Below are positions 944 to 36,151 of a stretch of DNA of 64,000 nt, piece after piece (within the stretch, counting starts at the first letter, position 1; each line of letters opens with the position of its first letter). The DNA comes from Oopsacas minuta (Eukaryota; Animalia; Porifera). The DNA is taken from contig JAKMXF010000335.1 of the NCBI GenBank assembly GCA_024704765.1, positions 186,001-250,000 of the forward strand, in the 5' to 3' direction. Made by a program: the position numbers and the translations under genes. The notes under the pieces are model-generated. The model saw nothing but the letters and a program-made list of their open reading frames with translations. It had not been told where the DNA came from and did no database searches.

Positions 944-2063
944 TGTATGTTGTTACTGATAATTATTATTGAAGTTGAATTAACAGTGGGTTCGTAATGG
1001 CTCACCGATATCGGACATTACAAGTTACAACTAAGCCCTTTGCATTTTCTATTTGTAGTCCAAATAACAACGATAATCCGCTCATTTGTAAATTGGGAAA
1101 TCGACCAAGTTTACCCATAAATCTTCAAAAGATTCTTCCAGGAAAACCTGTAATTACCTATCTATTAGTTATATTACTCAATTCCCTAAAGATTATATGA
1201 TATAACTAGAATGGCCAAATGGATACAATATTGCTCTAAAAAATGCTATCCAATTCCAGACTACAAATCAATGGATTCATTATCCATAATCTTAATATTA
1301 ATCTTATAGGCAATATAAATATTATTTCTCCATACAATATCAGAGTTTATATTAGAGCTTTTTAATTGTCGAATATATTTTATGGGTAGTGACCGTGAAA
1401 CATATTTGTATTTATTTAATTCCGTAATATGTTTGTGGGTTAAATAGGAGTAGTATTATGTATTCCATTTACTGCTGCTATTGGACTTCCTAAAGTAGTA
1501 TATGGACTCGACTGGAAGTGGAAGGGTATAAAATGCTAAAAACAAAATTTAGTTCCCATTCATTTTAATGCAATTCATATTACTTATGCACTCGGAGAGT
1601 GCGTAATATTTTTGTTTTTTGAATCGGTACGTCTTACCCGAGTTCCACTGTACGTAGTTTCTATTATCTGTTTTGTACTGCAATTATAAAATGATCTAGT
1701 AATCCTCACCTGAATTATCATAACAGAACTACAATAATATAATATTAATAATCTTAGCTAATTATATAATTACAATATTTCACTGTATTGCACTTTAATA
1801 TGCACTAATTGTGTATCAGTGGTTCACGCATGTTTATTCTTTGTATTATGACTATCCTACAGCTTATAATGATTATAAATTCATAGGAGAGTAAGCCATA
1901 ATTGTCTAATTGTGGTCCAAGCAAGTAAAAGAGAATTGACCAATAATATATCGTATCACCCACGTGTAGAAGGAGTTTACTAAGGAATATATCTGCCTAG
2001 TAATTTGAGTACAGTTTAGGCATAATATTATACAAATACTGTTGAATCAAATTTCAAGTAAAA

Positions 2064-5000
2064 ATGGATGCAAAGTGCTCTATACCAGGAGGCCCGTTGA
2101 GCGAGCTCCCGGACTGTCAATGCTCTTTTTCAGATATCTACGAGACGACAGAGCTAGCGAGTGGTCTTCACCAAATCCCACATTTGAATTATTTATTCCA
2201 ACATGTATCGAGTAACTTCACATACTCAATTGAATACGTACAAGGAGTAGCATTCTGGGGTGTTTGTTTAATCGCAATATATCTGTTTTTAATGATTCAC
2301 TGCATATTCTATTCGCTGTGTATGTGCAGGCTAGTGAGGAGGAGTAGGAATTCCTCATGGGAGAAATGTAGTAAGAAACCGAAAGTTTGTCTTACAATAT
2401 TCGGGGTAGTATCTTTTATTGGCATAACAGTTTGTGCTGTTGGAATTTGGAGTGATATTATTCAGAATAGTACATTGGTTAACTTTGTTGATGTTTTTAA
2501 ATCTACAAATAATCTTATTTCAACGCTCGATGAAGGTAAGATACATTTAACATTTCGCCAGTAAACTTAGTTTAACTGGAAACTTAGCTACTAAAAAATC
2601 CGAAATTTGCTTAGAATTTCCATACTCATCATCCTCTCATAATAATTTCCAGATATTCCATTCGCTAAATCCCAGGATTTTCGACAATTTCCGCGGATTC
2701 CAAATTGTATATCCAACTTCAAGCTATTGTATGGGAAAAGGCACATACATCTGCAAATACTTCCCTGTATTACCTGTATAACACAGGGATTCCTTAGGGG
2801 TTAGAGAGTACGGATTTCAATAATTTTAACATATTAATCAATTTGACTTTTTCGACACATCCGTAATAATCTTCATATAATCTTTAGATATAAAGTCAAT
2901 ACCAGTTAAAGACATAGACAAGCTACTCCAAGAAATATCAACAGAACTAGATTCTCTACCAGGAAATACAACAGACCTAGAACAATACAAACAAGATATA
3001 GCAAACTATTTGATTATTACTGAAAGCATAGAAGCAGATATACATGATGTGACGGATAAATTAGATAATATATCTCTTGGAGAGTTAGACTCTATGATGG
3101 AAGCAGGAGTTAAGTATAGGTTTGTTGTTTGGTGTCTTAGTTTGTATTCAGATTAGCCAGTTAGAGTTTTAAGAAAATATATTGAACGTTTCATTTATCA
3201 GTGTGCTTTTGGGGTGACATCACATATTAGGGACTTTCGCCACGAGACAAGAATTATGCAAAAAACACAATGTCACGCTATATTCTCAGCATCCACAAAT
3301 ACCTTTCATGAGCTCGATTAAAATATAGTGTATGCCTGTTATTAGAACCCTTGGGAGTGACCAGCATTTATTATACAGAAAGATATGAGAACTGTTTCCA
3401 GAGGATGACGCTTATAACCGGCATCCACCGTATTACATAATCCAAATTAGATAAGAAATGGTGTTGATAATAATATAGCTCCTTTTTTAGATTAATTGCA
3501 ACATTGCTACTATTCTCTATCACAGCTATCGTGTTATTCTCCTCCATAGTCTACGCTATCAAGCCTCTAACCAGATACACTGGTCTAGTATTTCTAATAA
3601 TAGTAACATTATTTCTTGGTATTTGGTGGTTATTAGGCTCGTTAGCTCTCAGTGCGGATATCGCTCTTGCTGATTTTTGCATTTATCCAAATCCAGATGC
3701 ATTCATTCAAAGTCAAATAACAATAGACAATCAATACAAGGTAATTATTTAAATTTTATTGGGGATAATCGCTCTCCTGTTCACAACTTTGGAGATCATG
3801 CCTCGAAATTTGGCATGTATACTCGTAGTGACATCTAGTTGTGCATCTGTATATCTTTTTATTTGACTAATACGAACAATTGTCTAATGAGTATATGCAT
3901 CTAGGAAGAAAGCAAGTATCTATTATATTGTCACGGATGTGATAATCCTTTTACAACTATTATTAATTTTGAAGACAAATTCAAACAAATTAATGAAACT
4001 TTGGAAAACTTCACAAACTTTACATTTCAACACAGATCTACAAATCATCAACTATTCGTTAATACAGCTACTCTACACGTAAACATATTGTCAGCTTTCA
4101 TAGACGTACATAAAATCATATACAACGACCTAAGTTGTAATGAGACCAGCGCTCTCTATGCAAATGCTATACAAGATGGCTGTTATAATGGTTTATTACA
4201 TTTTACAATAGAAACTAGCTGTGCTATAGCTTTAGCTGTTGTATTTCTGGTGCTGACTACTTCACAATGTAAGTTGTAAAATTCACTTTAAAATATTAAA
4301 TTATCGATAAATCTCAGACACAAATATTATCCTAATTGATAAACTTTCAAATCTGATAGTCAAAACATTTTGACACCATTCTCAGGAAGTTTGAGGGATA
4401 TCGTATAGATATTTGAGTTTTCCGCCCGAACCTGAAAGGACCTCTGGGGTCGGATCGAGCTTGCGACCTGTAACAGAGAACAATGTGAATCCGAAGGCCC
4501 GAATTAAATAGTATATTATTCTTACTTGAATTTAGGCTTCAATGCTTTCAGACTGATAGCTTACTATTCTAAGAAGAATAATGAAGTTAAAGGTAGATTT
4601 GTAGGTCTACCCGATTTCGCTCCAGTTAACTCTTCTGGCATAGAAATAGACCGTAGCACTGTCGTAGCTCCAACGAGGACGCCAAACTTCCATCACGACC
4701 CGAGCAGGGTGGGATACACTAGATCCCTGAATGTTGCTCCAGCACAAGAATATACACCTACACATCAGCCAGGATATATAGGACCAGTAGGTTTAATCTA
4801 TACGGTCTAACTATATGCAATAGAATATCGGTTCCCATCCTGGTGTACATTGACCTCTCGATGGTCCACGTACGACAGCAGGGGAGGCAACAGCGTCTCA
4901 AAATTTATATTGTAGTGTATGGAAGAGGGTCTACAGAATGTGTTAAAGTTGGCATAAGGGTTATAGTAGGTACTTTCTCGTTTTCGTAGAGGGCATAAAA

Positions 5001-5490
5001 TCCTGGTAAATGTAAATACAATCGTCTTCGCTTGATATGTATTACATATTGGGTTGATAAGTTTATTAGAAGAATAAATAATGAATTTCAAATAATTTTC
5101 GCTGTTATGAAACTGACAGAAATTTAATTTTCATGTTGAAACATAACAAAACAAACAATTGTTGCAAAACTATGGATATTCACATTAGCAGACTATAGTT
5201 TTGCAACAATCAAACTAGTTTATACGTTAATACAATAGTCTGATGTCAATGTGTATCCTAATTTATCAATGGACGAACTTCCTGCATTCACAACCGAATC
5301 AATCCAATATGAGAAATTCTACAGACCAGGAGTAACAACTAACTCAGACTATATCTATGACACTGATGAAGAAACTCGTGCATCCTTAAGAAGCCCAATG
5401 GAAGAGAATCTTTACAAATATTTCCCTAGAATAGCACAGTCTCTATCAGATGCAGATCTTGACCAAAATTCCCCATACTCTCCAAATTAA
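2064..5490 (+). CDS. TTYH: Tweety-family membrane protein/channel, multi-exon (approx. 2064-2536, ~2890-3115, ~3490-3740, ~3905-4268, ~4560-4786, 5239-5490)
   Basis: LHQIPHLNYLF N-terminus, two N-terminal TM helices, WWLLGSLALSADIALADFCIYPNPD (cf. tweety AVGLSDFCSNPD), YYIVHGCDNPF and LSCNETSALYANAIQDGCYNGLL. GT..AG boundaries seen at most junctions; internal exon limits approximate. Confidence 0.88.
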
Positions 5491-5500
5491 TATACACATA

Positions 5501-5630
5501 GGGTGCGTTACAATTCAATGAATAGGGCGCGCTCTTAAAGTCAAGGCGAATCAATTGAATTTTAGGGTGAAGGAAATTGAATATATGAAATAGGATAAAT
5601 TGGTTCTGCTATTGGATTTGTAACGCGCCC
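5501..5630. mobile_element. Short TIR element just after the tweety 5490 stop codon
   Basis: TA|gggtgcgttacaa ... ttgtaacgcgccc|TA (13-bp TIR, one mismatch). Confidence 0.7.
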
Positions 5631-5808
5631 TATTCGATGCTCGACCTTCGCTAATACGTACTCCACGGGACCGTAGATATACATATATGCTAATATTAGT
5701 TATCACAAGGCATTGAACGCAAAAACACTACTGCCTGGAGAAAGTATTGGGATACTTTAGCCAGCAGTATATGAAATCAAGTATGCGAGATTTTTTTCTC
5801 TCTCTTAG

Positions 5809-5895
5809 GCATGTGAAGAATATGAACTCCCTCCCAACTATGCAAACATTATACAATCAGCTGATTACGAAGGGTATAAAGAAATTTCTCTATAA
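5809..5895 (+). CDS. Candidate alternative last coding exon of the tweety gene (ACEEYELPPNYANIIQSADYEGYKEISL*)
   Basis: Strong acceptor tttttttctctctcttag at 5791-5808, then 28 open codons in phase 0, compatible with the phase-0 donor cca|gtaggt near 4786. Contains PPNY (PPxY). Confidence 0.55.
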   Translation, partial: ACEEYELPPNYANIIQSADYEGYKEISL

Positions 5896-6000
5896 TTGTA
5901 TTTAACCATTGGATTATTATTGTTATGTATTTTAATGTATTACTCTTTAACTATGTTTTGTATTAAGCTGAATTATTTAAATGGTCTTTCATTATCATTT

Positions 6001-6140
6001 ACTGTCAACTCCCATTATATCGAAGCTAAAGGAGCCGCGATAATTGCTTCGATAAAATCGATGAAAATTTGTGATACTTTGACGGTTTGGGACCATATTT
6101 GTACAATTTCATACTTTGATATAAGCGGGTATTTCTCTAT
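6001..6140 (+). mobile_element. MITE family A (TA-flanked, TIR cagtcaactcc..ggagttgactg), 3'-truncated copy
   Basis: tgtcaactcccattatatcgaagctaaaggagccgcgataatt ... gacggtttgggaccatatttgtacaatt shared with 12 other copies. Confidence 0.8.
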
Positions 6141-6285
6141 TACATTTACTTATATTCTCTATACAAGGGATTCAATTTCACTCAAAACAAACATACACAA
6201 CGAAGGGGTGTAGAAATGTAGTTCAACAATCTTAATATTACAAATCCAATATTTATCATAAAGTACACAAATTATATCAAACAAA

Positions 6286-8201
6286 TTATCCAGCAACAAC
6301 ATATGATTCTACTCGACACTCATCGTAGCCCCTTAGAATTTTAAAGTATCCTCCTAAACTGCCCCATGATGTACCCCAAGAATTCGCACAGAGCCAGTAA
6401 GGTGTACTATAACTATCTACACCCCAGCCCATGATCTTTACGGCATGTACTCCGATCAGTGCTCCGTATGTGTACTTGTATACTCCTCTACTGTATGCAT
6501 AGAAGTCTTCGTATACCTGAAAATAAAGTATTTTAACTAGAATATTAGCAGAATAATTAATTTACTAATTTATGAATTCAAACGTGACGTAACAAATCAT
6601 ATACACTGAAACCTTCACAAACGGGGCATATGGAAGCGGAATAGCACTTTTCGCCGTCTCTGGCACTCGTTTGTCTTAGGTTACACTGTATTTTAAATCT
6701 CAATGTTGTCCTAAATATTTTAAAAATTGAGTTGACTGTGAAACTGGTAAGAGCTATGAGCTATAAATATGATATGTGTATGGAAATTCATTCAACTTAA
6801 GTCATCTCAAATTTCAAAGCCAAATCTTGGTTCATATCTCTGTGAAAAGGTGACGAATGTTCTCCCTATGGTATACATTGATTCATTCAATGATAAATTG
6901 AAGAAGTTAAGAGGCAAAACGGACGTGAATCATCACTCACATATAAAGCAGTCTCAACTGGACCTTTGGTGTATATTTCATACATTATCTTATTGATACC
7001 ACTGAGTGAGTAAGCACCATATACAGGGTAGTAGAACTCTGGCTTAACATAGCTAGACGAAGGACACTCCTTATTTGAGAGATAGCATTCTCCGGTAGAC
7101 CTAGAACTACCGCTTTTATATGCATAGCAATCCTCTGTTACTGTTCCTGTAGACCTCATGTACTTCCAAGCTTCTGAAATGTATCCACCTTCACAACCTA
7201 CATAGCGTATAGAATAAGATATTCACATACTTGCTGATTAGCTCCCCAAGATTCATGGATTATCCCCGAATTTTAATAGAAATCAAAGGAAGAAATTGAT
7301 TTTTTCCAAATAATTGTTTGAAATTGCTATTTAAGGATGGAAACTTTGAAATACCGAAATTTAGCAAAGAGATTATACAAATAGATTAGTCAGTAATTAA
7401 CTGTCACGTTTTGGGTAGTGTGTATGCTGTGTTAATCTCCCAATAATAATTCTGATTTCTTTCTTTCTAGAATCCTTAAATTCAAGGATTTCAACCCTAA
7501 ACATCACTTGATTTACTCTAATAAACAAATGTTTCAAGCAATTGTGAACATACTAGACAGCAATTAGTCAGATTTGCGTTGCATGTTGCACTGTATAGTT
7601 AGTAATTCAATGAAACATAGTGTGATTAAGTCACCAATTCAAAATGCACTATTTCTATGAAGCTTTGCGTTCTTTGCAATAAACTACACTCCAAATATTT
7701 TAATAAACAGAACTTACCTCTACTAGAACTATCACAAGATACCAGCTGTTGAGGTGATAATATAACCCTTACAGTTTCCGAAGAGTATATACACAGTCTA
7801 TCTGCTAGAGCACTAGTAGCCGCAAATGCCCAACAACTTCCACATTCTCCTTGATTTCTAATTGAACCTCCGCAGCCGGAATACCTCCTACGAATATCGT
7901 AGGAGGTCGGCGCGCCCATCGGCCAAATATCCTCCTCATTACCAAATAAATGGGGGGCAGGAGGCAGTGTTTCGCTCACATTTTCTGGGACTACCCCAGT
8001 AAGGCACCGTGCTTGCTCGAAAGTTAAATCTTCAAATCCTGGGCTAACTGCTGCTACCCAGCTTATATTAATACTGTTCACTATTTGAACGATAGTTTTT
8101 ATATCAATTAATTCAGTGTTTCTGCCAATTATTGTAAAACTCTGTGTTACAACGCACAAACTGCCCAGCATAAATATCGTGCATAAAATTGCCATCTTCA
8201 T
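6286..8201 (-). CDS. Cathepsin B-like papain-family (C1A) cysteine protease, 3 exons (8201-~7720, ~7200-~6945, ~6518-6286)
   Basis: Signal peptide; NQGECGSCWAF (catalytic Cys); LSPQQLVSCD; GCEGGYISEAW; GPVETALYVYEDF; GVHAVKIMGWG (His); WLCANSWG (Asn); ends ECRVESYVVAG*. Confidence 0.92.
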
Positions 8202-9586
8202 TCACCATTAATCTCAACCATTCAGTATATATGCAAGAGTTTTGCTAGGATTCTGAAATCTGTACACTGCAGCAGCGGGCCATATGGTCATTAACGTATT
8301 ACCATTTATCTTAAGAAGCTTGACAGGCAGTTGATTAAGTTGATTCACAAATGCTGACAGAATTGCATGCTTAATTACCCAAATCTGTCATGAGTGAATC
8401 CCAATTCGCTGTCAAGTGAAGGGTTGCTGTGTGCAATTGTAGTACTTATTTATGAAAATTAACAATAATGAATTCGTATAAACAATTGTAATTAGGTTTC
8501 TTTCGTAAATATTTTATTATTTGTGTCGTTATGAGCACAAATATAGACAAAAGTATTTGTTGTTGATATTCATGTCGCGGCAGTTGCCTTCGAGTATTAA
8601 TTGAGTAATTCATTCTAGATTAATTTGACTTGATTAATTGATGGTATGGCATATTATAGGTGATGTATGAGAATTTCCAAACTTATGGGTGTATAAAAAA
8701 TTGAAATTGTTATAAATTGTGAATATACGAAGTATTTAGAAAATTGATATTATCCATTGGCTATGTATCAATTCCTCTTCACCTCTTTTATACCTATATT
8801 TATCCACATATGATGAAAACTGGAACTTGTACGTCTTGCCGTTAGTTTCATATTAAAAATAGTATTACGAATTGGGAGCATATCTAATTGACTGCATTAG
8901 ATGGAATTGAAGAGCATTAACGAAATGTCCGAGTAGAAAGGAAAATATTTCGAATTTTAAAATTGAATCAAAGAAATTGTAATGTTCTAAATTTGAATGG
9001 ATAACGTTAATAATCGTATTTATTACTTTGATTGGTGAGAAGACTGCTGACAGGCTTATGGCAGTTCAAAGAGAGTTTGAAGTATTTCAAGGATCGGATT
9101 TCTTTCGGAGTGGAATAATTTAAATTACCAGAGTGAATAATACAAACTCTATGAACAACAAATACACATGCAATGTGATTATAACTATCGTATTTTATCG
9201 AATCGTTTCAAAATGCCGAAAATGGAAAGAAAAATCGATAAACACCCATTCAAATGTACAATCCACTGTTTCTCAATATTTTTTGGGCCAAATAACTTCC
9301 TTAAACACTTCCCGTGGACGAAGAAACGCCCCCAGCGTGAGAAAACTGGTATAAACCATTAAATACCAAGTTAGAGTATTAAATGATATAAGTAGTTCAA
9401 CAACAGCAGAATCCATAGAAATAACTAATACAAAATATATAGCAATTATTATATCTATAGTATCAGTACGGAGATTAGAAGTGTACAATTCAAAATATTA
9501 CAGAGCTTTAGAGAATAAGTATAGTGCAAAATACAAATAATATACAACTGAGGGCTGAGCTATAGCTATCGGATATTTACATAGTT

Positions 9587-16116
<6,530 letters not shown>

Positions 16117-20248: not shown

Positions 20249-23200
20249 ATGGAACATACTAGAGACGAACAACTAATCTTTTCTCAAGCAAACGGACAAA
20301 ACATGGATCAATCTAACTCTATCGAATTACAGAATAATTTCTCTAATGGAGTCTGCAATGGTAACGCACTACATCTTGATATGGAGACCGAACATTCCGA
20401 TGGCAGTGACCAAAGCTCATCACCATCTCAAAACTCCGAAAGCCCATTCCCTTGTATACCAGACACGCCAGATGTTGATGTCGATAACGACAACACACAT
20501 CAGCTGTCTTCAATGAGCTCTGACTGTATGGATCCATGCTCTAGCCCCTTACAAGAAGGAGAATCACTAAACTTACACGAGACAATACTCGATATGGATA
20601 GAAGTGAGTTCATTACTGATAAATTGATAATATAGTTTTGCTTTGCATATTAGTTAAGAGTTAATTACTGCAAACTAGAGTGAAACGTCTTTTATGGGAA
20701 TTTGGTAAATATAAAATAGCAAATTGATTCTTTCAAGTTCTTATACATACTTTTGGCAATGAATACTAGATTTTCAAGAGAATATAAATTTTCATAGTTC
20801 TCATTACCTCATCTTTGCAGTCACGAAAAATTTTAATTATTCATGGGGGTGATTAGTAAAATTTCCAATATTGGCCGAGAAATAGTATCAAACTGCGGGT
20901 ATAATTTGTGGTTTGTATTCGAAACCATGAAAAAGAAGCAGAAATTATTTTGAAATTTGAAGACAATAGGAACCAACTGAAGTAGTATCAGTTTCTTGAA
21001 TCTAATGGAATGCAACTTGTGTACAAGATTTGTATATGACTGTATATCGAGGTGTAAAAAATTCCAATCGAGTCATACAATATCCAATGGGAAATAACTA
21101 TATGTGTTGTGAAACAACGAATTTTGGGTGACGATAACAAAATTATATACAAAAATATTTAACCAGAGATGACTGAATAATTAGAGATGAAAATGTAAAT
21201 ATTTTTGATGGTAATAAGGTTTCCTTAAATTGTTAATCGTGTCAAAACTCGTGACGGTAAAATAATCAACATCAGTTCGGTTCCAATTGTAGATATTTGA
21301 ACAAAATATTGCACAATTAAACGCGAATAACACTGTTTACAAAGGTGTTGGAAACTATGTATTTTATAAAGTTGGTTGTTAAGATAAAACAATATTTGAA
21401 ATTTCGTTGCGAATATTATGAAAATTCGAACAAGATGAGATGAAGACAAATTCACATTAATATCTCTGACAAAATGTTGTGTAAATATACTTCCATTGCA
21501 TTTAATAACCGCCAAATTATTAACCGATCTTGAACAAATATCGCGGGGAGATTTTTACTACAGTTGTTGATATTCATATCAATATTTTGAGGCAATCTTC
21601 GTGTAATGATAAAAATATATACAATATTGACGATGTTACTCAATTCTTATAAGACAAGTTTCAATACACGTTTGATGAGTGAAATTTGATGCAAAAACGA
21701 TGGTGACATTCTTTTTCGTAACATTTTGTCACCCTTTCAACATCCACAAATTGACAATTGATATTTTCTCGTTTTGTAACTACCGAAATACTCATTTCCA
21801 AAAAGTACAGAAAATGGTTTTGATACACGGTTTGTACCAATCTGACTGGTTTATTGCTTCATGTAACAAGTTAGTGAAAATGTTATCATCAATGTTCAAA
21901 TAAAATTTTAATTGTAAATACATTTGTTCGTAAACCATTGAAATTATATTGAAACAATTGAATAGACCCAACCAAGTGATTGAATAATTATTACGTGAAT
22001 ATAACTGAATTGTGGTCTTGTTTTAAATTATATACTCCATGGGTGAACGCTCTACCACCATCAACACATGGTACCAAGACTGAAGATAATTTCAAACATA
22101 TTTGAAAATTATTAACTATAAACACTGAGAAAAACTATATTACCTTTTGCTATAGGTTTTTCCAATATCTTTGGCCAGGCAGTTTAATTTCCCAACAATT
22201 ATGGATATTACAAAAGAGAGTGGGTATTTGAAAGTGTTTACATATGAAACCAAACTGTAAATATCATACTCCAGCTAAATATTTATGATTTAAAATGTTC
22301 TCTTAATCGAGGCCAGCCTTTTCGCCGGCACTTCGAAGTACTGATTCAGACAAAAATGAGATTTCGAGTTTTCAGGAACTCCGCTTTAGTGGGACAAACT
22401 TGCTGAACCGAATATTTAAGCAGATTTCTGTGAATATATCTGCGAAACATTTTCCATAACCAGATTTCATTTTCAAGCTAAAAGTTCAGAACAGCAGTAC
22501 TACACTACTACCTCTATTTGTTAATTAACAATTGTAACAATTATTCTATGCAAAGTTCGAACCTAAAAAATGAAATTTATTAATTATCTTCCGAATTCTT
22601 AAATTCTTTTACATTCAGACTTTACAGCTGTAGGATTTTTATAATTAACCATAAATTAGTTTCACTTCTAGAACATCTTATTCAAAATTATGTGACCATC
22701 TGCAACGCCAGTTTAAGGGTTTAAATGATAAATAGCTAAAAGCCTTAATAATCGCACTCTATTGAAATGTCAGTGTTGTATGATAATGAGGATTCAGTAG
22801 ATGTAATGTAGTGAGTAAATATCAGTAATCAGACTTGATTGATTCTTGAATTAGAAACATATTTGATTGTCTTCTTATTTGTGATTATACAATATTTGAG
22901 TTTGAACATGCTCCAACGGTCAACTTTCGTTTTATTGAAGCTCAAGGGACCGCGATAATTACTTCGAAATAATAACTGGTATAACTTATGATACTTTGAC
23001 GTTTTGGAACCATATTTGTACAATTTCAAACTTCGATATATGTGAGCATTTCAATGTAACGAGAGTTAGGCTGTATTTTGTGAAAATACCAAACATTAGA
23101 AACTTCAATTAAACAAAATTGGTGAATATTTCATTGATTTTAAGCAATTTTTGGTTAAAATGTAATTAAAGCATGAATACTTCAAACATATAATAATTGT

Positions 23201-26200
23201 GGAATTAATAATTTTCCTACATCCGTTCTTCTGCAAAATTATATTTATGAATATAAACAAAAATTTGGGTGTTTTTATATTAAAAACCGAATTTTGATTC
23301 GTGGGAGCGAAGATTCTAATAATTATTAAATTTACATTAATTATCCCAAAATTAATTGATTTTTGAATAAAATGTGGTGAATTTTGTAATTAAAATTTTA
23401 TTTAAAATAGAGTTTAATGAAAATTCTATTCGGTTAGTGGTGATAGGAATTGACACGCATTACAATCAATTTTGAGTAATTTTTGTAAGGAATTTGATAC
23501 CTCGAAAAACTTCCAAATTCTTGAATAATTGATGTAATAATTTCTAGAAATGTATAATAAGTTTGTTGACCCAATTAATTATATTTTCACACCTCATTCA
23601 AATGAAGGATGTCATTCAAATTGAGGAATAATCAAGCAAACACTTTTATTGAGAATGACAACCATTATCTAGCATTTGTTCTTGAATTACACTGAATATA
23701 TATTACTCCAAATTTGAGGATTACCTTTCTATTCAAATTTTAATCTGTGAAACAACAAATTAACATTTCACTCTATTGCAATTGAGAATGAACGGTTTAC
23801 ATTTCAATGTCTTGTTGACATCTCCATTGTATTTTGATAGTATTATCTCAAATATTAATTAGAAAATCTCTTATTTCATCCGAGTTAATTTTGGAATAAT
23901 ATTTCCAGGCAGTTTGTCAAATTATGCGGTTTGTTCTGATTAAGTTTTGTGGAGTTTCTTATGTAAATTTTGGGAAACTTGTATTGAATAATCGGTAGCA
24001 TTAGCAAAACCTAAGAAATTTTATTCTCGTTAATATTAGCAACTTAATAGGAAGTAATTTTGGCCTCAGATATCTTATTATTTACTTTAAAGATATTTCC
24101 AATTTAGATTCCCCTTTCATCTCTGGATTTTCTGATATAATCAATAAACACAAAACCATATTAAGCATGATACATCTAAATGCATAGAACACGGGTTTAA
24201 TTGGTTTGTATCGAAAAATGTTAAAACTCCAAAAAAGCGGGAATCTGATTTCGAAATTCCTTTGTTTTTGGCTTTCTCATTTCTATAAAATTTATAATTT
24301 TCATGATTTCGAAATAACAATTTACTTTAGTGTATTAAGATGTGTATAAGAGACTTATATTATGAAAAATCACTGGAAGTTAATCGCGAAATAATAAGGA
24401 AGTAAAATGAGGGATTTATGTAAGTGATTTTCATTTGGAAAATAGGGCTAGAGTCGCTTATTATGAACATCAAGATACCAAAATTCTCGTCCATATAAGC
24501 GAACATATTTAACACAAAAGCTAAGGGGGAAACGTCTAGATATCACCTACTCGGTTTCGAGTTTTCAAGCCTTTTCTATAAGTAATCATTGCATATTATT
24601 CGGCTATTGGCTAATGACAGTCACAGTAGTGCTTTTTGGCTACTCTGATTTTTAAATCAGATTGACACTCTCTAAAACTGACATAATTAATCTCTCATAT
24701 TTTGTGTTTCCTGTCCACATGCTTGTGCATATTATGCAAACTTTCCAAATTTAAGAATATTGAATCAGTAATTTTACTAAACCTGCAATTCATGCAAATT
24801 CCTCAAAATTTCTGAGAATTTTATTCCCCACAATTTCAACTTAACCACTTATGAATATTCCTATTATCTTAGTCACAGAAGTTAAATGATAGCAAAATAC
24901 CCTTTCGGTGCCATCTTTGCATGGTCAAGTTAAAAATATTTTCCCAAATTACAAAAGGAACAATGGAAAGAGGATACTCAAGCCATTGAGACTGGTACAA
25001 AAATGCTCTCAGATGGCTTGTTTAATTAATTTACATTTTGGGTTAATACACATGACAATACAAAAATTCTCCAACAGATGCATAAGTAAAACTAAAATTA
25101 TGTGATTAAATAAAATTATTCAAGTTGAGCCCATTCTGTGGAATTTTCGTAGGAATTTAAGGGTATGCCTTTTGGGAATTCAAATTGTAAGTGTGGGTGG
25201 GATGAGAAATGATAGAGAGTTTGGTAATTCACTTTTTGCAGGAGTTATTTCCTATATGAATGTGTAGGAATAATTTTTTAACATATTAATACATTCTTCA
25301 GGAAAAGTATCTTACAGGATAAATAGCATTATTGATTTTAGGAAATTATTATTTTGACTATATAAGGTAAAGAGACGCAAGGTGAATATGACATGAAAAT
25401 GTGTTAACTAAATTGGAATACTAGTCCTTCGGGAGTGTGAAATATGTTGCCCTGAGGCAAACATGAAAATTGGCAGTGAGAGGTCACAAATTTATATTTG
25501 AAGAAATTTTATAGGAAAATTACAAAGGCCAAACTCATACACACCAGAACAACGGAATTTACTCTTAAAATACTTTGATGACTACAAAATGAACTCCACA
25601 CATAGAAAGAACATGCAATTGATTGAACAATGCGCACAAGAGCTTACAATCCCCGTACCTAAAGTCAAGGTAAGAATTACAAAGTTAGTTCATATTCACA
25701 AAAGTGTATTTTAAATGTAATTACACCTCTAGAATTGGATCGGAGCTGAAGCTGTGAGGAGAAAGAAGAAACTCGGTTTATTGCCAAAAGCTAAAATGTA
25801 TCAACCAAGTATGCATGCGCCTCAAATCAACAATGTAAGTCATGTTTAATGTACTTTTGCTATGGAAGACAAATCTCTAATTTGACAGGTCTTTATATGA
25901 TTATATTCCTCTATAGATTGTCTTAACACCTAATAAAACGATGAAACGACAGAGATCAACTCCTATCTCTAAGCCTATCCCTCAGGCTGGTTACCAATTA
26001 GTATACGCTGCATCTGAAAAACAGATTACAGAAGCGAACGGACATGGTAAGTGCAGGGGTGAAAAATTTCGTAAGGAAAGACAACAGCCAAAATTCAAGA
26101 GTCCACAATGAAATCCAAAATTTGCTTTCTTATTTTATTTCCCTGCCATCAAACAATGATTCCAGACAATCTCCTGCTTGTCACGTTCTTGCAACTGTCC

Positions 26201-29099
26201 AGATTTTGAACGTCTGCTATTATTGTAACAATTTATAGATTACAGTAAATTTGCAATGAAGCAATACTCGACAGCTGATATGATAAAACCAATACCAAAT
26301 ACAGTTTTCGCGAAAACAATCCCACATGGCGTGAATCCAGCAATTGGGCAATTCGAGATGGGACTGGAAGAAACGAATGTACTTACGCCTCAAACAGTGA
26401 TAAAACAAACTCAACGTCTCGTGAACTACCAACTTGATGTTGACGACCCACAACAAATGCTGACTGCAATCCAAGAATTGGTGAGTTGTGATCATATGGT
26501 ATTTATATTCCATGAATTATCTTATTCATAGCAATTTCTCTCGGTTTTCAAGTAGGTACTAGTATTACCATAATCGACTGTAAATAATTCTTAGGACAAG
26601 TTTATATATGTGATTAGTAATATATGGAAATTCACGAGAATTTGTGAAAATAGATCGAGACGATATTGCAAGCTTCAAAAATAGTTTTTACAGTGTGAAA
26701 CCAGAAAACTCTAATAATAAATTCAACTATCATACAGTCAGCAGCATCAATTGGAGGCTATATGCTAATTTTTAAATGTAAATTCTAGGAAATTTAATCC
26801 TAATACTATAGAAGACATTAACAGTAACAGAATTCTGAGAATATTGTAATATGATTATCATCTGAATCAAATATGGTTAAAATAGAGTCAATATGATAAT
26901 AATCGCTGGGAATGGTTTTATCCGCGATCTCGTTTTACCAGATGTTGTGAAATGTTAAATTGTAACTTTTTGTGCCATGGTTCGAGCACATGACCTACAT
27001 ACATGGGTATTGATTCTATTAAAATGTGTTCCTGTGTATCACCGCATGCATAGCGAGATATATACAATGGAAATGGTTGTCATTCTTATTATTTATTTGT
27101 AGCCACTTTAAAATTGATCATTTAAATGCTAAAGTGGGTTGAGTAACAATAATTGTTTGATTGAGCGCTACAGAATGGAGATAATTGTAACTAGCATTAT
27201 TTTGGGGGGAATTAGAGGTTGATTTGTGTACTAGAACGAACTTAAACATACAATTTACATCTTATTTCCATTCAAAAGAGGTTTTTGAATAGAAATTGCT
27301 TACTAGACCCGAACATATGTCAATACAATTGGATATATCTCTCAGCATGAATAGAAGCAATTACTTTTCAAAACTGAATTATTCAATTTGTGCTTTCTAA
27401 GCTCCAACAGTTATACATATAAGGATTTATTGCATTTTTTCCTCTTAAATATATCAGTTACCAAGAGCTGAGTCCAATTATAAGCCTTCTGACTATGTTT
27501 TCGTATCGCTAATGTTATTAGGGGAGTAACCGCCATAAACGGAGTGACATGGACGCTGAAAAATGCTACCACGTTTCACCGTTCGTGGAGATTCATTTGT
27601 GCGGGGTGTGATGCAAACTGAAGTATGTAACCTTTGAAAAGTTGTCTCTTTGGATGATGCTAATTTCTGCAATAATAAATTCGATAAATTCACCTATAAA
27701 TTCTAAATTTAGTATCAATATTTGGAACAACAAGGATTTGAGGGCTACGGAGTACTTGTAAACACAAAACAAATACAAACTCATCTTGTATCAACACACA
27801 AAGGACTTTCCTATCATCAGAGTCAAGTTAGAGCTGGAAAACCTTTAGAGAACCCATTCATGGGATATATATTCTCAGAAAATGGTGAGTTTCAGTTCCA
27901 TTTTGAAGTCTGTTCGTAATTGGCACTTAAAACACTAGTAATCATATTTGATTATGTGTCTAATAACCTTAGCCAAATTACTTACTTTAAATCATATTTT
28001 GTGGGCTTACAATGGAAAAATTATTGTAATTTCGACCACTGAAATAAACTGCAGCATAACTTCGAACATTTGTTAGCAGAAACCGCTAAATACTTATGGA
28101 TCTTCAATTGGTCGCCAATAATTAAGACTTTAGACTTTCAAATCCAAAATGTGTAATTAGCATTTAAAACATTTTATCTCCCAGATTTGAGGGTTATTGA
28201 AATTTGATTGAATATACATTCTACTAAACTTTCTCAGAAAAATAGTTGTTAATTATTAGAAATACATCACAAGATCTAATATTGTCATATATTTGTTATT
28301 TTTATTTTTGTTTATTTTTAGAATCTACTGATAAACCTGCAACACCAGTAACCTCTCCAGATAATTCCGTAGAAATGAATCTTAGACGAAAAGTTGAAAT
28401 CGAATTCGCACTCAAATACAGTAAGTAACCTCGACACATATACAGAATGTCCTTATTAAATGTTGGAAATTCTGCATAGAAATAATGAAACTGAATTTAC
28501 ATGCCAAAATGACATATTTTCACAGCTGTTGCCTATTAGCTTTTGTCTATAGCAAAATCATAACTATTTACATACAAAAATGAACTGTATGCCCATCAAA
28601 TAATAAACATGGATTTTGTATAGTACATAGTTCGCATAATAGTAAATTCGCGTATTTCAAGGAAAACTCAAGCAAAATACAATTTGCCAATAGGCGAACT
28701 CCACTGTATACATCTTTGGCCCAATATCTTTGAATTTTTTCTTGCTCGTAAATAACCTTCAAACCATGCTATACGCTATAATTATAAATATTTTTTATAG
28801 AACAATGCACTGGTAAAACCGATATACCATACGATAACCTATCAGAGATGGACATAATGATAGCTGGTATGCCAAGTAACATAGAATTCAATGCACCTCA
28901 TCTTTACAACAAATATCAACTCGAACAACTTGCACAAGCCTTACCACAGATTTTCTTTCTCAGACCACAAGACACCCATGAAGAGACTGTTATAAAAACT
29001 GAACCAGATTCGATCAGTTCCTATAATTACATCCAAACCGTTCCAACTGCGCTGCTCCCAAACGGACACATAATTCAACCGACATTATTAAAGCTTTAG
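20249..29099 (+). CDS. Predicted 517-aa transcription factor: acidic/Ser-rich N-terminus, HDX-like atypical homeodomain, TFII-I-like N-terminal domain, one GTF2I-like repeat. Exons 20249-20603, 25515-25669, 25733-25834, 25917-26046, 26239-26480, 27713-27884, 28322-28420, 28801-29099
   Basis: All seven introns are GT..AG with matching phases; exon lengths sum to 1554 nt (518 codons including TAG). Homeodomain: KLQRPNSYTPEQRNLLLKYFDDYKMNSTHRKNMQLIEQCAQELTIPVPKVK|NWIGAEAVRRKKK. I-repeat-like: LRRKVEIEFALKY|KQCTGKTDIPYDNLSEMDIMIAGMPSNIEFNAPHLYNKYQLEQLAQALPQIFF. The link from exon 1 across the 4.9-kb intron is the least certain part. Confidence 0.8.
22917..23073 (+). mobile_element. MITE family A copy in intron 1 of the homeodomain gene
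   Basis: cggtcaactttcgttttattgaagctcaagggaccgcgataattacttcga ... gacgttttggaaccatatttgtac ... gagagttaggctg|TA. Confidence 0.85.
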
Positions 29100-29477
29100 T
29101 AGAATAATAATAGGTAAAATTTTGAACACACACATCGCGCAATCGAGTATGCATTCCACATGAATCACTTTAACAATAGTGTGTTAGTCATTAAAGCGCA
29201 GATAATGATCTCCTCTCTTCTCTCCTTTTCTCCTATAACTTTTGTAGATAGTTACAGTAGTTATTTTAGACTCTACGTAGCATGCTGCATATTTTAACTT
29301 TATTTCTTACTATGCAACTCTATGCAGACATCTCATGTAATATTGTATACATATTGGTATTGATAATGGATACTAATAAATTTTATATCAACACCTGCTT
29401 ACTTTATTTATATTGGGGAGGAGGTAACTGAGATATCAATTGGGGTATTTGACTGATTATTCGCCATTGCCTTAGAG

Positions 29478-31389: not shown

Positions 31390-34300
31390 ATGAGCAAGAT
31401 AATTTTGAAGGAAGGTTTTGTCAAAGTTCTAAGCGGAGAGAAAAATATATTCACCGTTGGGAGTATCAAACTCGGAAAGAAGGTAAGTATTTACAAAATT
31501 GTTAATTAACCGAATACGGCGGGGAAATGTGTGATTTTATGACGTCAAAAGGTGCTAAGTCTCGTTTTTGGTGCGGGAATTGGTTAAAACAAAGTGCTAA
31601 TTTAGTGTTCCCTTTCATTACGAACATAAAACTTCCGCAGCGATCGGTAAATTGAATTTATATTAAAATTTCTTACCTAATATCAGAAAACTTGAAATAT
31701 TTAGTTCGTCCCTTTCAAATTCATATTCTAGGCACACAAATCATTTGTATTTTCGCCTCCCAGATTCAATGTATTTTAACGATATTATTTTAAACGTAAA
31801 ATTGGCAATACCCCTGTATCTCAGATATTTAATTTGAATCTGTCTTATATAAGACGTTACGGCATTAATAGCTACATATATGGTCGTGTTATAGAATTAT
31901 CCACACGAATTGTTCATTTGAAGCAACATTATTCCTAGAAAATGAAATTCAAGGGTAGACAATTTATGAAAGTGGGAAGACTTCTGTTTCAATTAGAGCT
32001 TAGGAGTATTAAGCCCTTCAAATTGCTAAAACTGGATAGACTTAAGCCATTTGCTTTGAAAGGTCATAGCATCCCTAATCTGGGATATATAGCATCCATT
32101 TGATAACTATAAATTGCTTATAACTTAGTTACTTAAATGATAGATTGGAATGTTTATTGATTCTATGTAATAGAATAGTAAATGGAATATTAATTTGAAG
32201 ATAGCTTGTGCATAATCATAGGTTGTTAGAATTGGATAATTATATGATAAATAATGAATTAATACTCTCGGAATATTGAAAGTTCATTGAAAGAGAATAA
32301 TCCGTAATAGTTCCAATTCAAACGAAATTGTAAGTGAAAGTAACAAGAAATGAAAATGAATGTTGCAATTTCTTGTCATTAGAAAATTATTTTAGAAATA
32401 TAAAATTAGCAGAAATGATACATATTTATTACTTAAGGAAATCTACAATGCAATAATTTCTACGAATTTATATCTGTGAGTCATATGGTGCAGTGAACTA
32501 TAACGACAACACGTATGTAGCGACGATCTAAATTCTATTATTCACTATCCACTTTGGACATTCCTTTCGTTGCAATTTAGCCTTCTAGCTGTATATGTAT
32601 ATTTTAAATATGGAAGGAAAATTATAGAGTAAATTCATGAAGGCGAAAAAGCAAATTCAGCCACACTAAATTATTTCAGTGTGTCTGTAATTATAAATAT
32701 GATCTGATAATTCGTAATCATTACATATGTTAGCACATTAGCCTGATATTAGGACAAATGTATTTACAGATCAGCAACATCTCATCAAGTATAGCAAAAT
32801 ATTGGCAAAAGGACATTTTTTCATAACAAACATGCTACAAGCCTAGAATTATATCGAGCTTCACAGATATACGTTTAATGACACATTATAGTTACTACTA
32901 TCATTTTCTGTAAATGTTTGTTTTGATAGAAAATAGACAGTAAATAAGCCAGTACATCAAACCAAAAGTTGTATTTTACGCTGTGATATAAATACTTGGA
33001 AGTTCCCGAATTCGAGTACAGTGGGTCCTCTCTTATTGTCCGCTTCGAACTTCATTGACCCACGGTATTTGCATACTTGCCAACCCCCTAGGATCTTTGG
33101 TTTATCCCGGGATTCTGCAAGAAATCCAGTGAGGAATTTGAGAATCCATGTCCAATAGAACATAAGTTCGTCAAATATATTCATAGAATAGATCGATTAA
33201 ACTCAAAATACGAATAAATAACTTGTAAATACCAGTACGGAGAGTATCGGGCATTGTTCAACCACATGTTAGCTAATCGTTACCAAAATACATGAATAAT
33301 TATGATACCATTATATAGAGAGTGCTGAGTTGTACCCACAGTGAGAGAATATATTAGTTATATCTAACTGCTGATGTAAATATTGCAGGCTGTATGATGT
33401 AATGTACAAATTACATATGGCCAGAGCCATAATTATATTGTTAATGAGGTTTATTTCATTTGCTCTAATTTGGAGTGAATACCAATACTTCATTATTCAT
33501 TCACTATTCACCATGTAATGACATGCAAATACAAATGAGTATAATTATTAACGAAGGTGTTAGGCTATAAGGAATGCTAGTTATTCGGATGGAGAATATA
33601 TGTCAAAATAACCCTAGACTCAAACGTGACCGTACTAGCTCTGCCGGTTTGAAATAATAACATATTTAAATGTAAATATTTGTTTTGCTATAGACAAAAT
33701 GGAATAAACAGTACTTAAAGCTAGCTCAAGATGAAAAAGACAAGAGATTACAAATATGGATATTCGACACACCGAACGGTGAATATAAAGACATTCCCAA
33801 ATCCATTTTCAGCTTAGATTCTAATACACAAGCCACACAGATGGCTGTAACATATAACGAGCAATTTTGTTGCATTATTTCAAGCTCTAAAGAAACGCTA
33901 ACAATTTCCTGTGATTATTATGGTGAACTGCTAGACTGGATCTCATATATTAAAAGGAATGTAAGCGCATTCAGTCGAGGGAGATTGCCAGCGATACCGA
34001 AAGACGAAGATATTAGGAAGGAGTGGACGAGAGGTGTGTCAGACCCAGGAGTAAATAGGGGAATGAAGGAGAATAAGACGGATAGTGTGACTAATTTGAG
34101 GAAGCAGAATTATGAGTGTCCAGTGAGAGTAACATCCACATTTGAGATTGAAAATAATCATATTTATGGAGGTGAGTTGAGCTCAAAAATACACATAATT
34201 ATAGAAAAATATATAGAGTTAACTCTGATAGGAAATTGTTTGTATGGTTCTGCTTCTTGCCAAGTGCATATGCATACTTGCCAACCCCTTATACATTTCT

Positions 34301-36151
34301 CTACATTTCCAAGTTCAACAACCATAAATTGCAATTCCAGGCTATTAATTTGGCCTTTCAAAGTTCAAACGTTACGTAACGCAAATTCCCTAAATTAGTC
34401 ACGCTTTTTGCCCGTTTTCTAATACCAAAAGAATGCGGCTGTCACACTTCGGAAAAGACAATAAATTTGCAAATATAAGCGAGAATCAGAAATAAAATGT
34501 ACTGAAATACACGATACACTTGCAAATATTGAGATATTTATTTATCAAATATATTCTTATAGACAGCAACATATTTTCGGTGGAAATAGAACAAAATGAG
34601 ACTTCAGAAAGACTGAAGCTATCAGGGGGCTATAACTTAATCCTACTAAATGATGGAATACAGCTTACGACACAGGACAGTAAAAGAGTCATATACTTCT
34701 GGCATGTTAAAGTGCTTAGAAGATTTGGATCATCAAATAGCCGATTTTCAATTGAATCTGGAAGGAGTAGTCAAAGTGGCGTCGGTAATTTTGTTTTTTT
34801 CACTCCAAGTTGTAAACTAATCAATGAAAAGGTCACCGATATGACTGAGCGTATAAAACATAATAAGAGTTCAGGTGACGTAGTTAGGATTGAGTCAAGG
34901 ACAACTCCCACAGACATATCTCCACTTACTCAAACACATAGTGCAACTAGGGTTCAGACATCAATTGCAAGCGAAAAATTCGCCCAAAAAGAACGCGAGT
35001 ATCCCAAAGAAAGTATTCGGCCAAATCCAATTTCAAGTGTAGATTCTTTGAACGAGAATGCATTCTATCCAATTAGAGTTAACAATGAAAGAGAAAAGAA
35101 TCTTATAACAACGAAAAAAAGTTTACCTCCGGAATCTGGGAATATCAGCGATTATAGTTTGAATGAAATACAGAAAAAACCGCTTATAAAGATTCGTTCA
35201 TCACAAACAAGTGATGCAGATTCAAACACTATTGAATTGAATACAAAACCAACTACAGTACATATAGACAGGCCAGATTATGTGAATTTTGAATCCTACT
35301 TAAGAGCAACTGCAGATGTTCAAGACCCTTCAATAAGTGATGCCCAAACTCCAATGAACGCCGAAGATTATCGTAAAATGTTGCCAATTGCATTCGAAAG
35401 GATGCGAAGCGAATCTGAACCAACTCCACCCAAAATTTGTCTACCAAGGGAAGATTCCAATAGCATGTATGTAAATTTGCAAAATATCCTACCAGCAAAT
35501 CCTGATGATAAAATACCTATGGCCAGGGAATACCAATCAAATTCTGTTGAGAACTTAAGAATGTCACCAGAAAGGCCTTCTCATATGCAAAAATCCGTTC
35601 ACTCTCTTAGCACACAAAATCTAGCAGGCTTAAGTGGAAATCAGGACTTTGAAATACCGAGTGATACAAATTTACAACCAACAGCCCTGCCAAAGTCGTT
35701 AAGCTTAATGCAAATAACTCACAGACAAGGACAGCCCCAACAACAACAACAATATTATCCGCCACAGCAGCAACAATTCTATCCACAACATCCATGTCTT
35801 CATCCTCCTACTTTTATTCCACAACAATTCCATACCGAACCAAACCAGCAGCAATATCCAAGGGGTGTTGATAGATTTTATCAACAGCCACCACAACAGC
35901 AAATTGATACACACAGACAAGTTATGTATCAGACAAACACAGAATTCCCCTATTTACAACAACTAAGACTACCGTATGCCCCTTCTGTCTGCCCTCCAGA
36001 TTCATTTCAACCTACACGCCAATATCCCAGATCTGCTCCCTCATCAGGAATGATAGATGCAGTACAAAGACCGGCAATACGAGATGTATATCCCTGTAGC
36101 GCTCCAAACACCGGGAGTCATTCTATGCAAAGAGATATCTACAAGCCCTAA
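31390..36151 (+). CDS. DOK: DOK/IRS-family adaptor (PH + IRS-type PTB + long Tyr/Pro/Gln-rich tail); exons 31390-31482, 33694-34171, 34563-36151
   Basis: PH start MSKIILKEGFVKV, TKWNKQYLKL and C-terminal helix GELLDWISYIK. PTB: FSVEIEQNETSERLKLSGGYNLIL...WHVKVLRRFGSSNSRFSIESGRSSQSGVGNFVFFT (cf. DOK WPYTLLRRYG..FSFEAGRRC.SGPG.FTF.T). Splice phases consistent. Confidence 0.85.

Follow-up and report, generated by a model that had tools for sequence, protein, structure and literature searches.

An expressed eight-exon gene of the sponge Oopsacas minuta encodes an atypical, HDX-leaning homeodomain together with a TFII-I-type repeat

The window analysed here, a stretch of 64,000 nucleotides from the glass sponge Oopsacas minuta (assembly GCA_024704765.1, contig JAKMXF010000335.1, positions 186,001 to 250,000), carries on its forward strand, at positions 20249-29099, eight exons which upon splicing in silico yield a coding sequence of 1554 nt (517 amino acids) with no internal stop. 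All introns are bounded by GT..AG and the exon end phases are 1, 0, 0, 1, 0, 1 and 1; the gene model put forward in the original prediction was thereby reproduced from the raw sequence. The spliced product is letter-for-letter identical to the GenBank protein LOD99_8396 of O. minuta, encoded at exactly the same coordinates, which places the model far beyond chance. It is true that the homeodomain exons, of 155 and 102 nt, escape notice in a list of open reading frames, being too short or interrupted. The gene itself, however, is not hidden as had been claimed, since GenBank already annotates these very coordinates and UniRef names the product “Homeobox domain-containing protein”, with a precomputed Pfam GTF2I match. 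The features of the locus, in window coordinates, are listed below.

20249..20603, + strand: exon 1, start codon and acidic, Ser-rich N-terminal region (aa 1-118), predicted to be disordered (ORF with GT donor; collinear in Vazella; pLDDT <50)
25515..25669, + strand: exon 2, first two helices of the homeodomain and beginning of the third (AG/GT ends; 96% amino acid identity in a third glass sponge)
25733..25834, + strand: exon 3, remainder of the third homeodomain helix (NWIGAEAVRRKKK), then a basic tail (loose ends 25669->25733; joint 25834->25917, depth 3204)
25917..26046, + strand: exon 4, basic linker (KRQR...) (joints 25834->25917 and 26046->26239, GT..AG, depth about 3150-3200)
26239..26480, + strand: exon 5, poorly conserved linker followed by the first helix of the middle module (joint 26046->26239; loose end 26480->27713; 89% amino acid identity in the third glass sponge)
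27713..27884, + strand: exon 6, core of the middle module (GFEGY...GKPLENPF), aa 329-385 (96% amino acid identity in the third glass sponge)
28322..28420, + strand: exon 7, linker, then helix 1 of the GTF2I repeat (loose end 27884->28322; Pfam GTF2I spans aa 406-471)
28801..29099, + strand: exon 8, remaining half of the GTF2I repeat, followed by the C-terminal tail and TAG at 29097-29099 (taken singly, the exon matches Pfam GTF2I at E 0.008 and, in PDB, TFII-I repeats best)
25517..25780, + strand: atypical homeodomain, aa 120-186, spanning intron 2 (AF2 model, profile against PDB, Foldseek)
28366..28973, + strand: GTF2I-like (I-) repeat, aa 401-476, spanning intron 7 (Pfam, family profile against PDB, AF2/Foldseek)

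Four sequencing runs were used, three of which behave as DNA and one, from the same sample, as RNA. In the RNA-like run exons 2-8 are covered 100-300 times more deeply than the introns (1500-12000 versus 17-38), exon 2 reaching 4450-8180 as compared with about 17-22 in the intron, while the depth of exon 8 (12210) stays high up to position 29199, indicating that the transcript runs on into a 3' UTR. Contig joints or loose ends from this run cover the exon pairs 1-2, 2-3, 3-4, 4-5, 5-6 and 6-7, and the joints between exons 3 and 4 and between exons 4 and 5 are equal in depth (3204 and 3146). The junction 20603->25515, which had been singled out for verification, is supported by a contig whose loose end at 25515 is the unique sequence of window positions 20578-20603, showing exon 1 joined to exon 2. 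The joint of exons 7 and 8, absent among the RNA-like contig rows listed, is based on the depth profile and on a Trinity transcript from the glass sponge Vazella, the 512-aa product of which is 81% identical to the Oopsacas protein and collinear with it over all seven junctions. In the third glass-sponge genome nucleotide similarity is seen in the exons but not outside them. The RNA-like run also contains, at a depth of 9, a minor alternative joint, 25379/81->25513/15.

Apart from this minor joint, only the length of the first intron (4.9 kb) would suggest that two adjacent genes have been wrongly merged by reader and annotators alike, and the chance of such an error is practically negligible: the equal-depth joints on both sides of exon 4, the loose ends tying every other pair but exons 7 and 8, and the Vazella transcript encoding the whole protein contradict any division of the homeodomain exons and the exons at 26239-29099 between different transcripts. 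LOD99_8396 is a real, single, spliced and well-expressed eight-exon gene.

The homeodomain, of which the Oopsacas protein has one, comprises about 66 amino acids and was modelled by AF2 with a pLDDT of about 90. The model shows the three-helix homeodomain fold with its helix-turn-helix (helices at aa 129-140, 149-162 and 166-183), albeit in an atypical form, and ranks 11-50 of the Foldseek search against PDB were all occupied by homeodomains. The Pfam Homeodomain profile (PF00046) nevertheless stays below threshold, the Vazella segment giving 12.6 bits against a cutoff of 22.9 (E 0.12) and none of the 16 family members matching at E <= 0.1. Comparison of the family profile of this region with PDB gave E-values from 2e-4 to 6e-3, the best match being 2da4 (2.2e-4), followed by Exd/PBX (about 1e-3) and engrailed (2e-3). 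Entry 2DA4 (DKFZp686K21156), which we take to be HDX, outscores Exd only narrowly (23.9 versus 21.4 bits), and the Atlas structure cluster nearest to the homeodomain is that of the “highly divergent homeobox” (TM 0.74). The HDX-likeness noticed by eye in the original prediction thus holds as a leaning towards HDX in the profile and structure comparisons, with small margins.

Helix 3 of the family reads NWIG[A/S]E.V[K/R]R, with Trp48 kept. In all family members, the position of Asn51 is occupied by Ala or Ser and that of Arg53 by Ala, Val or Ser, and the loss of both residues makes canonical homeodomain recognition of DNA doubtful. Their replacement throughout the family, together with the sub-threshold Pfam scores, may be an indication that the fold is degenerate and no longer reads DNA, mediating protein interactions instead, as HOPX-type domains do, while DNA would be contacted via the I-repeat (and, in demosponges, an HMG box). 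We regard this as possible, but the less probable reading, as helix 3 with its basic tail hardly varies from one sponge class to another (K, N, W, I, G, E, V, R, K), the pLDDT of the predicted fold is about 90, and such strong constraint on the recognition helix fits contact with nucleic acid at least equally well.

By profile and predicted structure, exons 7-8 encode a genuine GTF2I repeat. The Pfam GTF2I profile (PF02946) is matched by the Oopsacas protein over positions 1-71 of 75 with 27.1 bits, just above the cutoff of 27, and by the Vazella orthologue with 32.2 bits; altogether 15 of the 16 family members match it (best E 2.5e-9). The family profile found ten repeat structures of the TFII-I family in PDB (best E 6.6e-8). 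In the AF2 model the repeat (aa 400-475) has a pLDDT of 80-89, and Foldseek ranks 1-10 in PDB are all NMR structures of GTF2I domains (E 1.7e-5 to 7e-3, probability 1.00). The repeat is single in the Oopsacas protein and in every sponge orthologue. When single exons were compared with Pfam, PDB and Atlas, a signal came from exon 8 only, the homeodomain exon alone giving nothing meaningful. Phage-capsid matches of exon 5 were rejected as noise.

The case of the middle module, i.e. of exons 5-6, is weaker. It has many invariant columns across sponge classes, and when it was compared alone, by hhalign, with the N-termini of TFII-I, a helical (leucine-zipper) region just before repeat 1, it reached a probability of 13.7% and a score of 21.6 (P about 0.002-0.003), equalled by one of 300 column shuffles. 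Together with the repeat it aligns collinearly to the vertebrate TFII-I N-terminus plus R1 over 118 columns (probability 97.7%, E 2.3e-12), a score dominated by the repeat. No PDB match was found for this module, and since its pLDDT is 36-64 in both structure models, its fold matches are not trusted. The resemblance of the aligned sequences to the TFII-I N-terminus is, on its own, only suggestive. Hence, of the proposal that exons 5-8 are TFII-I-like, the part concerning exons 7-8 stands and that concerning exons 5-6 is weakly supported; the presence of a homeodomain and a TFII-I-type module in one gene was borne out.

Members of the same family were identified in the demosponges Amphimedon, Halichondria, Dysidea and Ephydatia. 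In these orthologues (Amphimedon LOC109581518, Halichondria LOC135349615, Dysidea, and Ephydatia Em0429g5a with paralogues) the homeodomain, the middle module and a single I-repeat follow one another as they do in Oopsacas, with 51-60%, 52-56% and 40-43% identity to the Oopsacas protein in the three parts, respectively. The long acidic N-terminus seen in glass sponges is missing from them, and between homeodomain and middle module they possess an added HMG-box-like segment without a detectable counterpart in Oopsacas. Pfam HMG_box is found in 7 of the 16 family members, always below threshold (best demosponge E 0.0015-0.002), and the UniRef name of the Amphimedon protein is “HMG box domain-containing”. 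A degenerate HMG box in Oopsacas was considered and rejected, as Pfam gave nothing and the linker aligned to the demosponge HMG segment with an hhalign probability of 1%; exon 4 contains the sole remnant of the site where the demosponge orthologues hold the box. In a scan of metagenome loci, three reached 51-58% identity over their best segment.

When the Vazella protein, a demosponge protein and the family alignment were used as queries in word-based homologue searches, only sponge proteins were returned. However, such searches reach only proteins of 0.55-1.75 times the query length that share 5-mers with it, and this blindness means that the result does not show absence elsewhere. Structure searches extended further. 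The second nearest structure to the homeodomain belongs to a mostly cnidarian Atlas cluster, “Homeobox domain-containing protein” (166 members, representative of 283 aa), the homeodomain model of which superposes on Oopsacas aa 122-195 with a TM of 0.74. GTF2I is listed for 52% and Homeodomain for 18% of its members, percentages which come from the cluster summary and apply to the cluster as a whole. In addition, the AFDB cluster matches A0A7D9IWC5, A0A8B6F065, A0A8B6D4P9 and R7V8A0 align over the entire stretch from homeodomain through I-repeat (E 1e-9 to 4e-6) and outscore most vertebrate GTF2I-family matches in the same table. The search for the domain combination in invertebrates was therefore positive for sponges, while its occurrence in cnidarians is apparent only, from the cluster summary. 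The notion of a special fusion peculiar to the Oopsacas genome has to be abandoned, given the conservation of the architecture in glass sponges and demosponges and a cnidarian-rich cluster listing both domains; its presence in many invertebrates also lowers the novelty, as the original prediction itself had conceded.

Domain shuffling that took place independently in sponges, and separately elsewhere, would make the pairing uninformative as to the origin of vertebrate HDX and TFII-I, and the HDX-likeness a matter of convergence or noise. Such an origin would agree with the marginal preference for HDX, with the absence of HDX from the first 30 matches of the whole model to Swiss-Prot structures, and with word-based and single-exon searches giving full-length relatives in sponges only, but it seems unlikely in view of the Atlas cluster in which both Pfam families occur and of the four AFDB matches covering homeodomain through I-repeat. 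Even more improbable is the derivation of the gene from a transposon, domesticated or active. I-repeats are joined elsewhere to transposase-type or chromo domains, several AFDB cluster matches are named as chromo-domain or YqaJ-recombinase proteins, and the Atlas matches include the transposase-derived GTF2IRD2/FAM200/ZBED5 clusters; yet Pfam shows no transposase, integrase or chromo domain in the sponge proteins, exon order is kept in three glass sponges with conservation of the exons only, and a single spliced mRNA is made from the gene at a high level. Rather than resulting from a local fusion, the architecture is probably an ancient one among animals.

With its HDX-leaning homeodomain, a middle module weakly resembling the TFII-I N-terminus and one I-repeat, all conserved across sponges, LOD99_8396 is very likely a nuclear transcription-factor-like protein. 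It may bind DNA through the I-repeat, the homeodomain or both (in demosponges also through the HMG box). The middle module would sit where the N-terminal (dimerisation) region of TFII-I sits relative to repeat 1, and by analogy with TFII-I it might mediate self-association.

The TFII-I family, which comprises genes of Williams-Beuren syndrome, is regarded as a vertebrate family, as is HDX. The sponge relatives and the apparent cnidarian ones suggest that the two may share a much older root. It is tempting, albeit rather speculative, to regard an ancient family with an HDX-type homeodomain, a TFII-I-type N-terminal module and one I-repeat, left intact in sponges and cnidarians, as their common source. 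In HDX the homeodomain would have been retained and duplicated; in TFII-I and GTF2IRD1/2 the N-terminal module would have been retained, with the I-repeat becoming multiplied. The sponge gene thus offers a concrete hypothesis for the origin of both families, although the margins for deep homology are weak. Moreover, with its lone I-repeat, the TFII-I-like module ahead of it and the HDX-leaning homeodomain, all shared by sponge classes that parted very early, the protein provides a minimal form in which the role of the repeat may be studied. The proteins are already present in databases with automatic domain labels, but the family otherwise appears to be uncharacterised, as had been supposed: in the papers searched, GTF2I was not mentioned together with Amphimedon and no description of the architecture was found, and the Oopsacas genome paper with its supplements mentions neither HDX nor GTF2I.

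As far as HDX is concerned, the comparison covers the homeodomain only. 2DA4, taken here as HDX, and the sponge homeodomain are alike in the long loop that separates helices 1 and 2, with its GMTS motif, and in the W-I-G motif of helix 3; however, 2DA4 keeps Asn51 (WIGNRRRK), which the sponge homeodomain does not. HDX is listed among the multi-homeobox genes (PMC6118893), whereas the sponge protein has one homeodomain, and HDX has been entered as an orphan family, lacking orthologues in invertebrates and tentatively assigned to a class (PMC2211742). As HDX is missing from the top Swiss-Prot matches of the whole model, an I-repeat is not evident in it. The sponge protein differs from the TFII-I family (GTF2I, GTF2IRD1, GTF2IRD2) in its N-terminal homeodomain, the six TFII-I proteins examined matching only Pfam GTF2I and, below threshold, FAZ1_cons, as well as in its length, about half that of TFII-I, in its occurrence in sponges, and in having one I-repeat in place of the 4-7 of the vertebrate TFII-I matches. 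Nevertheless, both possess a GTF2I-type repeat of the same predicted helix/strand fold, and just ahead of that repeat the sponge protein would have, like TFII-I ahead of its first, a helical module, the two being collinear in the alignment.

In agreement with the original prediction, eight exons with GT..AG ends and matching phases, rebuilt from the three forward frames, join into an ORF of 517 aa: the CDS reconstructed from the raw sequence comprises 1554 nt, and GT..AG ends and compatible phases were found at every intron. The gene had also been described as hidden; however, it is publicly annotated as LOD99_8396 at contig positions 206249-215099, which correspond exactly to window 20249-29099. 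The spliced product of the rebuilt model is identical in every letter to P0067, i.e. 'hypothetical protein LOD99_8396 [Oopsacas minuta]', a database entry recovered by a search seeded with an orthologue, which carries the UniRef name 'Homeobox domain-containing protein' and a precomputed Pfam label (PF02946). The gene escapes only a prokaryote-style ORF track. The assembly of this glass sponge (Hexactinellida), GCA_024704765.1, has been published (PMC10280926), and neither that paper nor its supplements mention HDX or GTF2I. The locus and its surroundings in the window are as follows:

10249-16116, minus strand, annotated Argonaute/Piwi-family protein of 965 aa with ArgoN, PAZ and Piwi domains, upstream flank of LOD99_8396
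20249-20603, 25515-25669, 25733-25834, 25917-26046, 26239-26480, 27713-27884, 28322-28420 and 28801-29099, plus strand, exons 1 to 8 of LOD99_8396, from forward frames and splice sites
31390-36151, plus strand, annotated IRS-domain protein of 719 aa, downstream flank of LOD99_8396
53644-56079, plus strand, NCBI-annotated intronless ORF of 811 aa, without a Pfam match

Genes annotated farther away encode a cGMP-dependent protein kinase, RPL13A, CCDC39, a sugar transporter, a zf-CHCC protein and a kinase. The product of the 811-aa ORF is rich in Thr, Pro and Ala with tandem repeats of the 'TTATPVVK' type, and this repeat ORF accounts for the local peak of GC content and AT skew at 54-56 kb.

The locus is covered by four sequencing runs of one sample, three of which cover the whole stretch at an even, DNA-like depth. 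In the fourth, RNA-like run (X4), exons 2-8 reach a depth of 1500-12000 as compared to 17-38 in the introns. Two GT..AG joints lie within X4 contigs (25834 to 25917 at a depth of 3204, and 26046 to 26239 at a depth of 3146). The joint most in need of a check, 20603 to 25515, was examined as well: the letters of the loose contig end before 25515 match window 20578-20603 uniquely, and therefore the 4.9-kb first intron is confirmed. The loose ends after 25669 and 26480 likewise continue uniquely from 25733 and 27713 onwards, respectively. The end after 27884 holds 8 letters that occur at four places in the window, including 28322 onwards, and is consistent with the joining of exons 6 and 7; the joint of exons 7 and 8 is not among the X4 joints listed. 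A further GT..AG joint in X4, 25379/81 to 25513/15 (window 25353-25515), has a depth of 9 versus about 3000 at the main joints and may reflect an alternative 5' exon, rarely used and situated immediately before exon 2. Intron 1 also shows 8-nt and 17-nt deletions and single-base changes (positions 23821, 24338, 24857 and 25497), along with a few SNPs, between the contigs of the runs and the assembly, which are likely allelic variation or differences in assembly polishing.

The Trinity transcript protein P0047 of the glass sponge Vazella pourtalesii, 512 aa in length, shares 81% identity with LOD99_8396 and is collinear with it over all seven junctions; P0003 and P0046 are its shorter isoforms. 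In a third glass-sponge genome, one contig (L003) retains exons 2-8 in the same order with 52-96% amino acid identity, and BLASTN alignment to that genome is confined to the exons. LOD99_8396 is a real gene, which is expressed and under constraint.

Resemblance to TFII-I had been proposed for exons 5-8. It holds for exons 7-8, whereas exons 5-6 give a weak signal when taken alone. Exon 8 by itself matches the Pfam GTF2I model weakly (E 0.008), and TFII-I repeat structures rank first when it is compared with the PDB. The profile and structure checks of the repeat were both run: the whole protein scores 27.1 bits against a PF02946 threshold of 27, its Vazella orthologue 32.2 bits, and 15 of 16 members of the sponge family match the model (best E 2.5e-9). 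The family profile recovers ten repeat structures of TFII-I, GTF2IRD1 and GTF2IRD2 from the PDB (E 6.6e-8 to 0.013). The AlphaFold2 model has a pLDDT of 80-89 over aa 400-475; in Foldseek searches the best ten PDB matches are all GTF2I domains, and the best ten Swiss-Prot structures belong to GTF2IRD1, GTF2I and GTF2IRD2. LOD99_8396 carries one genuine I-repeat, which is divided by intron 7.

The middle module (aa 313-385; the end of exon 5 and exon 6) is the most conserved part of the protein between sponge classes, with 52-56% identity and many invariant columns, and no match to it was detected in Pfam or PDB. Aligned by hhalign with five vertebrate N-termini of the TFII-I family, it reached a probability of 13.7% and a score of 21.6, which was attained by one of 300 column-shuffled controls; the reversed control scored 9.8. 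When the middle module and the I-repeat were compared jointly with the vertebrate N-terminus and repeat 1, they aligned collinearly in one stretch of 118 columns (probability 97.7%, E 2.3e-12), which extends from the I-repeat N-terminally into the second half of the middle module. Structure models are poor over this region and uninformative on its fold. Judging by the sequence alignments, homology of the middle module to the TFII-I N-terminus is somewhat favoured.

The presence of a homeodomain was supported in terms of fold, although the Pfam homeodomain model did not reach its threshold (E 0.12) and key residues are replaced. The AF2 model shows three helices with a pLDDT of about 90, and Foldseek PDB ranks 11 to 50 are homeodomains without exception. 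The domain is about 66 residues long, with a long loop between helices 1 and 2 and an intron falling within helix 3 (between VK and NW). Trp48 is present in the family, while the Asn51 position is occupied by Ala/Ser and that of Arg53 by Ala/Val/Ser in all members; this is an atypical homeodomain. The ranking of matches leans towards its predicted resemblance to HDX, with small margins. A profile of the region built from 11 sponge proteins matched 2da4 best among solved homeodomains (E 2.2e-4), followed by Exd/PBX (about 1e-3) and engrailed (2e-3). A designed repeat protein that scored above 2da4 was dismissed as an artefact of summed short matches. The 2da4 record is entitled 'hypothetical protein DKFZp686K21156', and we take its printed sequence to be the second HDX homeodomain; a literature look-up for 2da4/DKFZp686K21156 as HDX returned no confirming paper. 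The sponge domain and 2da4 have in common a GMTS loop motif and a W-I-G motif in helix 3, and of the homeodomains matched by fold, 2da4 is the most similar in sequence (29% identity). In an Atlas structure search with aa 116-195 the first cluster was 'highly divergent homeobox' (TM 0.74). Since the margin of 2da4 over TALE homeodomains is small, the link to HDX is plausible rather than established.

A HMMER scan of 1.84 billion representatives with exon 8 gave 43 matches. Besides relatives from glass sponges and multi-repeat TFII-I proteins of vertebrates, they comprise numerous single-exon ORFs in which the I-repeat half is very conserved, and a single odd protein from a bacterium. Those of the single-exon ORFs that were traced come from sponge metagenome assemblies or from entries without a known host. 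The bacterial protein (P0005; GIV43691.1, Bacteroidia MAG, 1937 aa) matches exon 8 in 19 short stretches and scores 135 bits against Pfam GTF2I, although none of its stretches passes individually, and it also matches He_PIG and DUF6859; the similarity to exon 8 probably reflects a short repeated motif and not true I-repeats.

The wider search for the homeodomain/I-repeat combination found it in demosponges. Full-length orthologues in Halichondria, Dysidea, Amphimedon and Ephydatia, several paralogues in the last of these included, were reached through P0030, a transcript protein of 383 aa. They share the homeodomain, the middle module and one I-repeat with the Oopsacas protein, but possess an HMG-box-like segment which the latter lacks. 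In the freshwater sponge Ephydatia muelleri, P0071, P0073, P0076 and P0082 represent at least four paralogues or alleles, and two of these contain segments resembling frameshifted or mis-spliced models. Ranked second in structural proximity to the homeodomain is an Atlas cluster of 166 proteins, mostly from cnidarians, whose summary lists both Pfam families (GTF2I 52%, Homeodomain 18%). The AFDB cluster representatives A0A7D9IWC5, A0A8B6F065, A0A8B6D4P9 and R7V8A0 aligned from the homeodomain through the I-repeat (E 1e-9 to 4e-6), whereas for most vertebrate GTF2I-family fragments in the same table the alignment does not begin before about residue 250-340. These are indirect signs that the architecture may extend beyond sponges.

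Several AFDB matches (A0A812BZB5, A0A8B6F065, A0A8B6D4P9, A0A8B6BJ70, A0A2G8LIF4, A0A8B6HEI6) are named 'Chromo domain-containing' or 'YqaJ viral recombinase domain-containing', and halves of them align to the span from homeodomain to I-repeat, which hints at ties of I-repeat proteins with mobile-element domains outside vertebrates. Only the I-repeat part was matched by the fungal hypothetical proteins A0A286U957, A0A2I1HJT1 and A0A015K1F7 and by Basidiomycota clusters (about 80 aligned residues, TM by query 0.37-0.39); judging by these models, the I-repeat fold may not be restricted to animals.

LOD99_8396 would act as a nuclear DNA-binding regulator. Basic stretches follow helix 3 and occur in exon 4, and in TFII-I proteins the I-repeat is known to bind DNA and protein. 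Across sponges the homeodomain's recognition helix hardly varies, yet the canonical Asn that contacts bases is absent from it, so the helix could target DNA or protein. The middle module may drive self-association, as the N-terminus of TFII-I does.

Public databases already contain the gene model along with its domain labels; no description of the homeodomain/I-repeat architecture was found in the literature searched, nor any paper combining GTF2I and Amphimedon. HDX has been listed as an orphan that lacks orthologues in invertebrates (PMC2211742). LOD99_8396 is an apparently uncharacterised protein, probably old in animals, of the TFII-I type, with a single repeat and an HDX-leaning homeodomain.
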